The position numbers and the translations under genes are program-made. From the sequence record OK040170.1: 64,000 nt of DNA; one strand, given 5' to 3'. This document shows positions 24,579 through 55,446 of this stretch, piece after piece; position 1 is the first letter of the stretch; each line of letters starts with the position of its first letter. The notes beneath the pieces were generated by a model. It made no database searches and was not told where the DNA came from. It saw only the letters and a list, made by a program, of their open reading frames with translations.

Positions 24579-25856
24579 TTGGGTGTTTATCTGTTAAATC
24601 CGGACTATGACAGGGATATCGCAGCTCTGCCTCGTCCTCCAATTATCCTCAATGATATCGACCCGGCGCATTATGAAGGTACTGATCCAGTCAAAGAACT
24701 GACCATGACCGAATATAGCGACGACTTCATTGAGACATTACCGGCGTGTGAGTGTGGCCACACCCATGGTCGGTATAATTCATCGAACGACCCAAGTATC
24801 CCTAACACGGTATGTCCGAAATGTCAGACTGAAGTGATGAGCCCAATCGATCGAGGGTTTAAATCTTCTGTGTGGCTGAGAGCACCTAACGGTGTTCGTG
24901 CGTTCATCCGTATCAATGCGTTGGTCATGTTGCTGAAGAACTTCACCCAGGAGAACTTCTCGGCAATTGAATGGCTCTGTAACACCAAATATAAGCCAAC
25001 CAACGATACCAGTGCCACGTTCCGTCGGTTCAAAGAACTGAACATCCCTCGTGGTTATAATCACTTTATCGAGAACTTCGATGACATCCTGGGCGCGATG
25101 GTAGATAGTAAGATATTCAAGCCATCTGCTAACCGTAACGATGCGTTGGTGTATTTTGATAAGTTCAGGGATCTCCTGTTCCCAACCGTCCTCCCGCTGC
25201 CATCTCGCCGGTCTATCATCACGGAGCTTAGTAACAAAACTCGCTTCTGTGCTGAAGGCTATGCAGATGTCGTCGATGCTGCACGAGCTATTTATAGCTT
25301 GGTCGGTAAAGATGAACCGCGTTATCAAGTGACTAAGGAATATCACGTATTCCGAGCACTGATGATGTTGGTGAAGTATCGGGAATATATCGACAAGAAC
25401 ATCCTGGGTAAGAAAGAAGGCTGGTTCCGTAAACAGATCTATGGATCTCGTACCGGGCCAACTTATCGTGGCGTAGTAACGTCTATCGCGGGATCTCACG
25501 ACTATGAAGAAATGCATATGCCGTGGGGGATTGCGTTAGGGGTTTATCACACCCACTTGATCGGAAAGTTAGTTCGTCGCGGATTCACCATCCAAGACTC
25601 TGAGGATCTACTGATCTCTTCAGTAGGGCGTTATAATCCGCTGATCTCCACTCTGCTGGATGAGCTGATTGACGAATCTCCGTTTACGACAATTAGTGGT
25701 AAACGTGGACTGCCTCAGTTGCTGGGTCGAAATCCAACGTTGAACTTACGTTCGATTCAGAACCTGTTTGTCACCAAAATCAAAAGGGACGTGCACGACA
25801 ATACTATCGGCCTATCGCTGCTAGTGCTGAAGGCTCCGAACTGTGACTTCGACGGT
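24579..25856 (+). CDS. non-virion RNA polymerase beta' N-terminal subunit (phiKZ gp55-like), exon 1
   Basis: Zn-binding CECG...CPKC, RKQIYGSR, GRNPTL and NCDFDG; the catalytic motif is cut after Gly. Confidence 0.88.
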
Positions 25857-26152
25857 AGAAGTAACCCAACTAAGTTGCCGTCTTAAAACTCCTTTAACTG
25901 CTGGGAACTCTTGCTAGGTAGATTGGCTACAACGTAACTGGAAACGGTAAGCGTGAATGCTTGAAAACAATCTAATAGAGACAATCAGCATCCAAGCTCC
26001 TGTAAAATGGAGAAGGTTCAACGACTATCGAAAGCACGTAACACGGATGTGGTAAACGTAGTGAGTAGAGTAGGGGAAACCCGAAACGGGGAGCACTTGA
26101 ACGATTCAAGTGAAGATATAGTCTGTTAAGTACTCGGTGCATTTAGCCGAGG
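25857..26152 (+). mobile_element. group I intron (phage IA2-like), 296 nt, no endonuclease ORF
   Basis: P AACTGCTGGGAA (25896), Q AATCAGCA (25983), R TTCAACGACTAT (26017), S AAGATATAGTCT (26113); P1 GACGGT/GCCGTC with U-G at the 5' site; P9 CTCGG/CCGAG then terminal G26152. Confidence 0.9.
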
Positions 26153-53288: not shown

Positions 53289-53356
53289 TCCATAAACCGG
53301 CTGGGGAAACCTGGCCGGTCTATGTTGTTTATGTACAATTAAGAGGAAACACCACC

Positions 53357-53515
53357 ATGCCTAGTACCAGTAAGAAACAAGAGCAATTCATGGCAGTCGC
53401 TGCCCACGACAAAGAGTTCGCTGAAGAAGCAGGCATTCCCCAGAAGGTTGCTAAAGAATTCCATAACGCCGATAAGCGTAAGAAGAACAAGAAAGCGATC
53501 TTGGCAAAACGTTGA
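53357..53515 (+). CDS. small phage protein (52 aa)
   Basis: GAGGA SD; MPSTSKKQEQFMAVAAHDKEFAEEAGIPQKVAKEFHNADKRKKNKKAILAKR*. Not in the ORF track. Confidence 0.75.
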   Translation: MPSTSKKQEQFMAVAAHDKEFAEEAGIPQKVAKEFHNADKRKKNKKAILAKR

Positions 53516-53526
53516 TTTAGATCTTT

Positions 53527-53550
53527 TTTTACGCAACAAGTTTAAGTATG
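53527..53550 (+). promoter_or_regulatory. TTTTAC-N14-TATG promoter-like element ahead of the RNA array
   Basis: TTTTACGCAACAAGTTTAAGTATG; same spacing as at 5661, 13112, 30334 and 47200. Confidence 0.6.
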
Positions 53551-53661
53551 TAGAAGCTGCATCAAGTAATCATTTAGTTCAATTAACTCCAGGGTCGATT
53601 GTCGGTAACTAAGTGAGATTCAGCTACAAGCGGGGATGGATCCCCACTAAGTATTGGAGAG

Positions 53662-53758
53662 CTTTAAGGGTACGATCTCAATCGTCCGGGTTGTGGAACA
53701 ACTTCCGCACACTAGTGCGTTGGTTTAGGGTTCGACTCCCTACCGGAATGCCTTAAAG
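53662..53758 (+). ncRNA. tRNA-like cloverleaf on an extended stem
   Basis: T-arm TAGGG-TTCGACT-CCCTA, D-like GTTG/CAAC, CGCAC-acta-GTGCG, TCCGG/CCGGA, outer CTTTAAGG/CCTTAAAG; no CCA. Confidence 0.55.
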
Positions 53759-53830
53759 GTAGCGCATGATAAATGCGAGCAACTAACACGAGGCGACATT
53801 ACGCGCCTACTCCAATCAAGACGAATTCCT

Positions 53831-53915
53831 GGTAGGTTACTCAAGCGGCAACGAGAACAGACTGTAAATCTGTTGCCTTCGGGCTTCGATGGTTCGAGTC
53901 CATCACCTACCACCA
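53831..53915 (+). tRNA. tRNA-Tyr(GTA)
   Basis: GGTAGGT/ACCTACC acceptor, ACAGA-ctGTAaa-TCTGT, long variable arm, GATGG-TTCGAGT-CCATC, encoded CCA. Confidence 0.95.
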
Positions 53916-53922
53916 AAACAAT

Positions 53923-54001
53923 GAACCGAGTAGCTCAACTGAATAGAGCACCGTCCCGCTAAGACGGAGGTTAGAGGTTTAAGTCCTTTCTCTGGTTCCC
54001 A
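53923..54001 (+). tRNA. atypical tRNA (GCT anticodon in a short-variable-arm body)
   Basis: TAGCTC...GAGC D arm, CCGTC-ccGCTaa-GACGG, AGAGG-TTTAAGT-CCTTT, bulged acceptor, CCA. Confidence 0.65.
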
Positions 54002-54007
54002 AACAAC

Positions 54008-54171
54008 GACACTGATCTCAAGAAGATCGGCAGCCTTACCCAACCGTGTCGCGGCGATCGCCAGCAATCGGTATTTAGTGCACGGTACGTAGACAAGCCT
54101 TTGAGCGAAGTTCCGCGTCCCGAGCCGTCGGCAGCCCATAAGCCTCAGTGAAATTCTGAGGGGTGTCACCA
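54008..54171 (+). ncRNA. 164-nt tRNA-like RNA with large central insertion and CCA end
   Basis: GACACT/GGTGTC-A-CCA, GATCT-caaga-AGATC, CCTCAG-tgaaatt-CTGAGG. Confidence 0.6.
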
Positions 54172-54175
54172 AAGA

Positions 54176-54241
54176 TGTCCTCATTGCAGAGGGAGGTTGA
54201 TTGTAGTCAGCCTGTTGTGAAACGAATCTGCAGTGGGGACG
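54176..54241 (+). ncRNA. three-way-junction structured RNA
   Basis: 14-bp GTCCTCATTGCAGA/TCTGCAGTGGGGAC enclosing AGGTTGA/TCAGCCT and a small hairpin. Confidence 0.5.
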
Positions 54242-54261
54242 CCTTCCCTTTCTAAAGTTTT

Positions 54262-54350
54262 ATCGAGATAGTCTACTTAAACCTAGTGAGGAATTCGACG
54301 GCGGATACGTCCGTAAGACTGCGTAGGTTCGATCCCTACTCTCGATCCGA
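54262..54350 (+). ncRNA. tRNA-like-domain RNA (acceptor plus T arm, no canonical D arm)
   Basis: ATCGAGA/TCTCGAT, AGTCT/AGACT helix, GTAGG-TTCGATC-CCTAC. Confidence 0.6.
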
Positions 54351-54363
54351 TTTAAAAGAACAA

Positions 54364-54490
54364 TGACGCCTGCACGTAAAAAGCAAACTGCGCCAGCTGG
54401 GCGCGGTGGGGGCTAAGTGCCATGAACCATGCGGCGAGATCGCGGCGAAGGTATAAGATAGCCAGGTGCGATTCCTGGGGGCGTCACCCA
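54364..54490 (+). ncRNA. 127-nt tRNA-like RNA with expanded variable region and CCA end
   Basis: TGACGCCT/GGGCGTCA-C-CCA, ACTGCGCC-agctg-GGCGCGGT, CCAGG-tgcgatt-CCTGG. Confidence 0.6.
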
Positions 54491-54492
54491 AT

Positions 54493-54590
54493 TAGGTACG
54501 TAAGTCTCAAGTGGCCGCATTCATCTGCCCGCATTCATCTGCCCGCTGCCTAAAGACTTTGTGGAATGGATTCCGCGTACCTAAAAACCA
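54493..54590 (+). ncRNA. tRNA-like-domain RNA carrying a 14-nt tandem repeat
   Basis: TAGGTAC/GTACCTA, AAGTCT/AGACTT, GTGGA-atggat-TCCGC; CCGCATTCATCTGC x2 at 54515-54542. Confidence 0.55.
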
Positions 54591-54619
54591 GTAAGTTAAA
54601 CTAATAGGACGATTCTACG

Positions 54620-55129
54620 ATGACTATCCTTAATCGCGATATGATCATGCAAGAACTCTTAAACTCAATAGATCCTGATGCAGGCCCATGTCTTGGGCTT
54701 AGCAGGGAAAAAGAGTTAGCCGAAATTTATACGCTAGGATTCAAGGCACCTCGCCAAACGGGGTCTACGTATTGGCTTATCGAAAAACTCATTGAGGATC
54801 GTAACTCAATTGTAATTTTGATTAATAGCGACTTTAAAGAACACTTCCTAGCGGATGTTGAGAAATACCCTAAAGTCATTTTCGACAAATGTGTTCAATA
54901 TGGACCATCTGTTGAACGAGGTATTCTTAATGGCGATAAAGACAATATAGTCGATCGCTGTTTCACTGCCAGGGAATTCCTAAACGCCGACCTAGAACGT
55001 CACCGCTACGCCACATCGGTCTTCTTTGATGGCGCGTCGACGATTGCTAGTAAGATTAATCTTAATGCGTATTACCGAAAGTTGGCCAAAGAAGTAAAAG
55101 GTTATCCGGTTACTTGGCTGATTAACTAA
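54620..55129 (+). CDS. hypothetical protein with degenerate P-loop-like motif
   Basis: APRQTGST resembles a terminase-type Walker A; only 169 aa. Confidence 0.55.
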   Translation: MTILNRDMIMQELLNSIDPDAGPCLGLSREKELAEIYTLGFKAPRQTGSTYWLIEKLIEDRNSIVILINSDFKEHFLADVEKYPKVIFDKCVQYGPSVERGILNGDKDNIVDRCFTAREFLNADLERHRYATSVFFDGASTIASKINLNAYYRKLAKEVKGYPVTWLIN

Positions 55130-55138
55130 AGAACACTT

Positions 55139-55446
55139 GATGTGCTGGTAAAGGTTTAGTCGCCTTTTTTAAGATCGTCCGCTAACGATTGATACTAGCG
55201 CATCTTTTTTATTGAAGAATCCCGCCGATCGGGTAGCGTACGTCTGGCGTAGTCATTACTCTAATTGAGTGGGGATACGAGGGGTTTACCAGTCGATCGG
55301 TGGTACCAAACTCCGAGCAGGTTGCAGCCGGCTGGAGTAAATAGGGGACTGCGAGTCCCCAGGTGCATAAAGGCCCAGAAATGGCGCCCGGCACAAGACG
55401 CAGCGCGTCGGTATCGAGAGGGGCTTCGGCCCCTCTCTTTATTTTC
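55139..55446 (+). other. GC-rich structured intergenic region (candidate ncRNA) ending in a terminator
   Basis: GATGTGCTGGT/ACTAGCGCATC junction, CCGATC/GATCGG domain, GGGGACT/AGTCCCC, then GAGAGGGGC-ttcg-GCCCCTCTC plus T-run. Confidence 0.45.

Follow-up and report, generated by a model that had tools for sequence, protein, structure and literature searches.

The 64,000-nucleotide (nt) stretch of record OK040170.1 analyzed here, which we call the window, belongs to the Serratia jumbo phage BUCT660, a Moabitevirus with a genome of 272.7 kilobases (kb). Window coordinates are identical to record coordinates. At 53516-54619 the window carries a 1.1-kb transfer RNA (tRNA) array without credible open reading frames, flanked by a 52-codon gene before it and a 169-codon gene after it, both on the + strand. 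The unit is bounded upstream by a terminator-like hairpin at 53296-53319, and the next such hairpin on the + strand is found at 55416-55437. Two putative RNAs within this array, termed E1 and E2, are the subject of this report. An original prediction, made from the letters of the sequence, held that both represent a reusable scaffold that displays different payloads, that this scaffold is like the tRNA-like domain of transfer-messenger RNA (tmRNA), and that the two are not decayed tRNAs.

A search of the whole record yielded just two matches to the tRNA model in the entire genome, and both are located in the array. ARAGORN made a single tRNA call in the window, for tRNA-Tyr, and the second tRNA was added by Rfam (Table 1). 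The former is the sole fully canonical tRNA of the phage. At least five elements within 53680-54590 consist of an acceptor stem and a T-type arm that close around unrelated inserts. The helices claimed for E1 and E2 are present where they had been placed, and minimum-energy folds give both outlines.

Table 1. Features of the BUCT660 tRNA array and the substructures of E1 and E2
Feature	Position	Strand	Evidence
Conserved non-coding stretch with T-arm-like hairpin 53729-53745	53656-53813	+	BLAST, alignment, ChrisDB gap
tRNA-Tyr(GTA), encoded CCA	53831-53915	+	ARAGORN; Rfam 53.9 bits; whole-record search
Aberrant tRNA, anticodon GCT (Ser), without long variable arm	53924-53997	+	Rfam 41.4 bits; alignment
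164-nt tRNA-framed RNA, encoded ACCA end	54008-54171	+	Fold; alignment
E1, 85-nt tRNA-framed RNA plus discriminator C	54262-54347	+	Fold, strict scan, homologs, model R1, covariation
E1 acceptor, 7 base pairs (bp)	54262-54268 with 54340-54346	+	
E1 U8	54269	+	
E1 inner helix, AGTCT/AGACT, 5 bp	54270-54274 with 54316-54320	+	
E1 hairpin 1	54282-54291	+	
E1 hairpin 2, UACG loop	54301-54314	+	
E1 T arm, stem 54323-54327 with 54335-54339, canonical T loop TTCGATC	54323-54339	+	
E3, 121-nt tRNA-framed RNA, 7-bp acceptor, T loop TGCGATT, ends ACCC	54365-54489	+	Strict scan; fold z -1.98
E2, 91-nt tRNA-framed RNA	54493-54584	+	Folds in seven Moabiteviruses, chance controls
E2 acceptor, 7 bp (eighth pair possible, 54492 with 54584)	54493-54499 with 54577-54583	+	
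E2 inner helix, AAGTCT/AGACTT	54502-54507 with 54554-54559	+	
E2 insert with 14-nt tandem duplication (54515-54528, 54529-54542)	54508-54553	+	Duplication in BUCT660 alone
E2 terminal hairpin replacing T arm	54561-54576	+	

As in a tRNA, the 7-bp acceptor of E1 stacks on a T arm whose stem has 5 bp and whose loop has 7 nt, and a 2-nt linker separates the inner helix from the T stem. We scanned both strands of the window with a strict descriptor that requires a 7-bp acceptor and, immediately after it, a 5-bp stem carrying the T-loop motif. No more than three matches emerged: tRNA-Tyr, E1, and an element at 54365-54485 (part of E3). E1 thus stands well beyond chance and is clearly tRNA-derived. 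Neither E1 nor E2 possesses a D arm or an anticodon arm with a 7-nt loop. An Rfam search of 53700-54700 at E-values up to 10 produced no match of either to the tRNA model (RF00005), and no family of any kind overlaps them.

When the region was compared with phage genomes by BLAST, three further groups matched it in E1 only, with 82-86% identity: the Klebsiella jumbo phage N1M2, the Shewanella phage SXP01, and about 70 records of T4-like Jiaodavirus phages such as JD18. Homologs of E1 occupy tRNA slots in these other genomes. For example, the JD18 representative begins 10 nt after tRNA-Leu and ends 4 nt before tRNA-Thr, and in N1M2 a tRNA-Arg begins 9 nt after E1. The element is unannotated in every GenBank record listed as carrying it. 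A covariance model had been recommended as a way to locate additional members, and one (R1) was built from the four jumbo-phage E1 sequences. R1 assigns 60-110 bits to every E1 member and at most 26 bits to tRNAs. Its best non-member is T4 tRNA-Leu, whose 25.6 bits come from an alignment over the acceptor and T arm alone. In the reverse comparison, the SXP01 homolog scores 28.3 bits against the tRNA model, for which the cut-off is 29.

Covariation was computed on nine distinct E1 homolog sequences, which retain the pairing of the acceptor and T stem expected by the original prediction. In their alignment, 97.8% of cells are paired, compared with 38-49% when partners are slid. Both sides have changed in 11 of the 25 pairs, none of 500 shuffles reaches the covariation score, and all five helices receive support. 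For instance, the inner helix changes from AGUCU/AGACU to AGUUG/CAACU in the T4-like clade, and the UACG-capped hairpin changes from CGGA/UCCG to CAGA/UCUG. Thus the inner helix is conserved within the family only at AGU/ACU. U8, the G53-C61 pair, and the canonical T loop are retained, and one invariant G·U pair together with several variable ones fixes the strand as +, the same as that of the tRNAs.

The best conserved part of E1 is not this frame but the 45-nt insert, whose identity between jumbo phages and T4-like phages is about 82-86% although their stems differ; the acceptor sequence and the discriminator are variable. This pattern suggests that the insert is under sequence-specific selection. 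BUCT660 has one copy of E1 per genome. A core pattern for the element had no match in 185,579 prokaryote genomes (one per species) and was present in four phage-sized metagenome contigs; pattern scans of viral contigs for further members returned only T4-like ones plus chance matches. R1 gave no E1 match in T4, phiTE, ChrisDB, or Ea21-4, and the family is missing from Rfam. We conclude that E1 represents a genuine, conserved RNA family, spread by horizontal transfer among unrelated lytic phages that infect Enterobacterales and Shewanella.

Two more specific ideas about E1 were considered and set aside. The conserved CUUAAAC sequence resembles the anticodon loop of a tRNA-Leu(UAA), but no stem flanks it, so it does not make E1 a decoding tRNA. 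Pairing of the junction sequence AAUUCGA with the T loop of the same RNA was also rejected, since the changes in JD18 and in the L113 homolog are uncompensated. A short reading frame within E1 is not retained in the SXP01 homolog.

E2 is a weaker case and is limited to one genus. The original prediction had assigned a T stem to both RNAs. This proved correct for E1, which has a canonical T arm, but E2 carries in its place a plain hairpin of 6 bp with a UGGA tetraloop, or alternatively of 5 bp with a 6-nt loop, and therefore does not show the 5-bp T stem and 7-nt T loop of a tRNA. Because this loop has 4 or 6 nt and no T-loop motif, the outline of E2 is not decisive alone. When the loop motif is dropped, an acceptor-plus-hairpin outline occurs 112 times on the two strands of the window, compared with about 82 times in random sequence. 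Adding the inner helix leaves nine matches to the full three-helix outline, compared with 2.2 by chance.

No E2 homolog outside Moabitevirus was found by BLAST against phage genomes or by local similarity to six related arrays. Among the seven genomes of this genus that were compared, the frame helices differ only in Haymo, where a G·U pair is A-U, and in Totoro, which has a loop-closing change. The insert has acquired three substitutions in Totoro, as well as the duplication that is restricted to BUCT660. The 30-nt spacer just after E2 diverges far more strongly in Totoro, and for this reason the E2 frame seems constrained. The two RNAs have therefore evolved in opposite ways, as E1 combines a conserved insert with a covarying frame and E2 combines a nearly fixed frame with a drifting insert.

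The inner-helix core AGTCT/AGACT that drew attention to the pair is present in both, but the resemblance is not significant. R1 fails to match E2 even at an E-value of 10, and local alignment of E2 with the six related arrays and with the rest of its own array, including E1, gives p values of 0.125 or higher. On these grounds, a relationship of E2 to E1 or to any tRNA of those arrays was rejected, and the common core must be treated as an observation rather than as evidence of common descent.

Stronger evidence for a shared frame comes from another slot of the array. In the phages Moabite and Yaphecito, the position of the 164-nt element is filled by a different, unalignable 121-nt insert, joined to the same T arm and to the same 3' strand of the acceptor. 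The T stem carries a compensatory change, and the acceptor has a new 5' strand that is fully complementary. The swapped element (885-1009 of sequence L005, from Moabite) folds with a z-score of -2.59. The exchange provides direct evidence that one frame accommodates exchangeable inserts. E3 likewise has a conserved frame and a variable insert among Moabiteviruses. Thus, a reusable scaffold is borne out for the array, with its five or more framed elements and its insert swap, while kinship between E1 and E2 themselves went undetected. The structural observation is accordingly partly confirmed, strongly for E1 and weakly for E2, and the interpretation originally placed on it is partly supported.

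Related arrangements occur in several other phages. Kodama has an extra tRNA-like gene (L002, 722-815) between tRNA-Tyr and the Ser-like gene, with normal D and T arms and about 24 nt replacing the 7-nt anticodon loop. N1M2 (L008, 1081-1186) and SXP01 (L009, 1292-1397) carry a second tRNA-shaped family beside E1, whose members fold with z-scores of -4.3 and -4.0, have stems that differ in sequence yet still pair, and extend a long arm with a conserved tip sequence. Just upstream of tRNA-Arg, JD18 contains an unannotated 127-nt element (L010, 1188-1314) that combines a Leu-type D arm, a T arm, and an acceptor with roughly 50 inserted nt where the anticodon region would be. Finally, Erwinia phage ChrisDB has a syntenic array that terminates at the same 510-nt gene yet contains ten ordinary tRNAs, among which odd tRNA-like RNAs are interspersed; array content therefore turns over quickly.

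Host RNase P, 3'-trimming enzymes, and the CCA-adding enzyme recognize the 12-bp minihelix that an acceptor stem forms with the T-type hairpin on which it is stacked. E1 and E2 would keep just this unit, with the D and anticodon region replaced by a folded insert. We therefore think it probable that both are tRNA-derived small RNAs in which the minihelix is a handle for host processing and stability and the insert is the working part. The array is probably transcribed as a single precursor with tRNA-Tyr and the downstream 169-codon gene, and host tRNA-processing enzymes would cut this precursor into stable RNAs of approximately 85-165 nt. Genes for a CCA-adding enzyme, Ro (TROVE), or SmpB were not found in four E1-bearing phages, so that processing of E1 must fall to enzymes of the host. 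The analysis establishes the structures, covariation, distribution, and genomic context of these RNAs, whereas their transcription, processing, and stability, and any action in trans, are inferred.

The conserved insert, the variable acceptor, the horizontal spread, and the absence from bacteria together suggest that E1 interacts with something its hosts share. Judging from the sequences, E1 most likely binds a host factor common to the bacteria of its carrier phages. Phage tRNA genes can counter defenses that cut tRNAs, including Septu and retron Eco7, which target tRNA-Tyr, PARIS and PrrC, which target tRNA-Lys, and OLD, which acts on anticodon arms (PMC13096335). Because tRNA-Tyr is the sole real tRNA of BUCT660 and is a known target of Septu and retron Eco7, our preferred guess is that the partner of E1 would be a tRNA-binding or tRNA-cutting defense factor or a translation factor.

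Several points weigh against this account. The fold energies of E1 and E2 are ordinary (z-scores of -0.24 and -1.68), and variation of the acceptor and discriminator leaves no conserved charging identity visible. The E2 outline is near chance, and its near-invariant frame gives covariation no purchase. A search of the phage genome for sites antisense to the two inserts yielded only self matches or 2-mismatch matches at the level of controls, and neither RNA resembles the pseudo-ToxI antitoxin mimic. The role as a decoy or as a ligand of a host factor is a guess from distribution alone. No RNA sequencing run was found that contains the array stretch; one wastewater run contained short contigs that covered only 53500-53742 and parts of tRNA-Tyr, and three raw-read runs had no matches. 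For E2, its fixed frame, its drifting insert, and its location 36 nt ahead of the next start codon are explained no less well by a processing signal, and E2 may act mainly in this way, defining where the downstream mRNA begins at its 5' end.

A wider proposal, which we regard as speculative and on balance unlikely, is that phage tRNA arrays are a modular platform built on a portable minihelix frame. Any RNA inserted into this frame would be cut out, tailed with CCA, and stabilized by host tRNA enzymes, and inserts would be swapped through recombination aided by homing endonucleases that reside in the arrays. E1 would then act in trans to block or decoy a tRNA-targeting nuclease of host immunity or another tRNA-binding factor, one that Enterobacterales and Shewanella would share. 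If this were true, E1 would be the first RNA anti-defense factor delivered on a tRNA frame.

We give little credence to the alternative that E1 and E2 are decayed pseudo-tRNAs, the neutral and functionless remains of a once larger array. The ten ordinary tRNAs of ChrisDB do make the Moabitevirus array look reduced, and E2, lacking the T-loop motif and having a drifting insert, a 14-nt duplication, and an outline near chance, could pass for such a remnant. However, neutral decay does not preserve helices by compensatory change together with an insert sequence across unrelated phages, as is observed for E1. Even the E2 frame is nearly unchanged in seven genomes while the adjacent spacer differs in Totoro, and ChrisDB too has its odd tRNA-like RNAs between real tRNAs. 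The earlier view that these are not decayed tRNAs is thus upheld at least for E1, whose helices are kept by compensation and whose insert is kept better still.

It is also improbable, in our view, that the elements are merely signals in cis that recruit RNase P and 3' nucleases to set mRNA ends, such that the excised RNAs have no role. Punctuation of transcripts by tRNA-like structures is established in organelles, and features of E2 match this expectation: only 3 nt separate it from E3, the start codon of the gene at 54620 follows 36 nt after its end, and it has a fixed frame around a drifting insert. E1 does not fit so easily, since its best conserved part is the insert and it sits between true tRNAs that need no extra signal. 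Furthermore, a bare signal would not require a conserved 45-nt three-way junction.

Another type of explanation would make these RNAs mimics or antisense agents with a defined nucleic-acid or toxin target, similar to pseudo-ToxI or to the C4/CI type released by RNase P. In phage phiTE, pseudo-ToxI is located near tRNA-Tyr (about 300 nt downstream; L135, 1395-1512) and allows escape from defense by repeat expansion (PMC3475682 and its supplement), and the BUCT660 insert of E2 similarly has a duplicated 14-nt unit. Nevertheless, we judge such a function very unlikely. Comparisons of E1, E2, E3, and the 164-nt element with pseudo-ToxI give p values of 0.13 or higher, the phage genome has no complementary site, and no clean tRNA frame forms when the phiTE locus itself is folded. 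The lack of any Rfam family over E1 or E2 also counts against this explanation, although it is uninformative on the ToxI family because the annotated pseudo-ToxI of phiTE is not flagged by Rfam either. As a separate observation, pseudo-ToxI of phiTE is flanked by tRNA-like fragments, UAUAGCUCAGC on its 5' side and GGUUCGAACC...CCACCA on its 3' side.

Least plausible of all is the tie to tmRNA, under which a tRNA-like domain of the tmRNA type would serve as the scaffold, bind SmpB and EF-Tu, and either take part in ribosome rescue or block it. Authentic tmRNA consists of an acceptor, a T arm, and helix 2, plus a pseudoknot-flanked, mRNA-like part that carries the resume codon and tag frame, and the G3·U70 wobble in its acceptor is the alanine identity element. 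E1 and E2 share with its tRNA-like domain an acceptor stacked on a T arm, the lack of a D stem, and a single helix that leaves the junction in place of the D and anticodon stems. However, they are a quarter of the size of tmRNA and have neither a tag frame nor pseudoknots, and the 3:70 pair is C-G in E1, G-C in E2, and C-G, G-C, or U-A across the E1 family, never G·U. ARAGORN found no tmRNA in the window, models of the tmRNA clan had no match at E-values up to 10 on 53700-54700, and the whole BUCT660 record is likewise without a tmRNA match, even though the same kind of Rfam search flags a plain phiTE tRNA through a local tmRNA model. Likeness to Escherichia coli ssrA is at the level of shuffles (p 0.17-0.49). 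The 9-mer ATTCGACGG of E1 does recur in the D-loop analog of the E. coli tmRNA, but it is shared at chance level and varies among E1 homologs. The lack of an SmpB gene in the four E1-bearing phages adds to these difficulties.

Bacteriophage T4 provides the closest natural precedents for the small RNAs we favor. RNAC (species 1) and RNAD (species 2) of T4 are stable non-coding RNAs from its tRNA region whose roles are unknown (PMC3014915, PMC9697503). E1 and E2 too are non-tRNA genes inside a phage tRNA cluster and on the tRNA strand, and at the 3' end of RNAC a canonical T arm precedes a strand that base-pairs with a segment farther upstream. In contrast, RNAC is 139 nt long with an extra 5' domain, and RNAD has no terminal T arm. 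Homology of E1 to RNAC was examined and rejected, as R1 gives only 10.2 bits (E-values of 0.34-4.7) and nothing in the whole T4 genome at an E-value of 0.1. E1 is an undescribed member of this known but unexplained class, the small RNAs of phage tRNA clusters.

Compared with canonical and armless tRNAs (RF00005), E1 has the same 7-bp acceptor, U8, 5-bp T stem with G53-C61, T loop, and array slot, but E1 and E2 are without a D arm and anticodon stem-loop, and the hairpin of E2 lacks a T loop. The bacterial Y RNA YrlA (RF02553) is a tRNA-mimicking non-coding RNA that also occurs in phages, but its ends form a Ro-binding stem and its acceptor-like end is closed, a topology opposite to that of E1 and E2. 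A link to Y RNA and Ro was discarded because weak, sub-threshold YrlA matches fall only on or upstream of the two true tRNAs, with none overlapping E1 or E2, and because the four E1-bearing phages lack a Ro gene.

The logic proposed for E1 and E2 is also that of an engineered system. In the "tRNA scaffold" for recombinant RNA production in E. coli (the Ponchon and Dardel approach, with an extension described in PMC3753655), a foreign RNA takes the place of the anticodon arm in order to be processed and protected by the cell. That scaffold is man-made and keeps the D arm, whereas E1 and E2 are natural and have lost it. Together with the E1 family and the array of RNAs without anticodons, the insert swap documented within one frame points to a natural counterpart of the engineered design.

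To our knowledge, no role has been established for the non-tRNA RNAs of phage tRNA clusters since the discovery of RNAC and RNAD. E1 is a conserved, horizontally mobile, and covariation-supported RNA family that is annotated in no database or genome record, and it resides in a jumbo phage that has a single real tRNA (Tyr) and spends one kilobase on tRNA-shaped RNAs without anticodons. Together with the array and the insert swap, this family offers a concrete and testable handle on what such RNAs do.

Several neighboring features of the array also deserve description. The aberrant tRNA with anticodon GCT receives no ARAGORN call in BUCT660. Its position 33 is C in this phage; Kodama, Haymo, and Totoro have U there, and Yaphecito has A. 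The gene probably does not encode an ordinary serine tRNA. Homologs of the conserved non-coding stretch at the beginning of the array occur in two groups, Erwinia jumbo phages and Ea21-4-like phages, and there overlap in part with genes annotated as "tRNA-OTHER" or "tRNA-Undet". The protein encoded by the downstream 169-codon gene has no Pfam match; a gene for a GNAT acetyltransferase lies farther along, and the neighbors are uninformative.

The tRNA-Tyr gene itself has been altered in two relatives. In Totoro (L004, approximately 640-1320), it is split after the D-arm region by about 700 nt that include an HNH nuclease gene, which could be an intron or an insertion. The Haymo counterpart (L003, 630-709), which is annotated as tRNA-Asn, is missing 8 nt that span the anticodon loop, either by deletion or through sequencing error.

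Two further candidates for structured RNAs are situated on either side of E1. A long conserved hairpin on the + strand (54175-54240) is found between the 164-nt element and E1, and its one weak match in Rfam, to a microRNA precursor, is of no significance. After E1, Moabite and Yaphecito have an insertion of about 300 nt (L005, 1180-1480) with a conserved non-coding block common to N1M2 (L008, 985-1080). Short hypothetical genes are annotated across the insertion, which may be another structured RNA. Elsewhere in the window, a group I intron match on the + strand at 25833-26142 scores 58 bits with an E-value of 4e-12, which is above the Rfam threshold.

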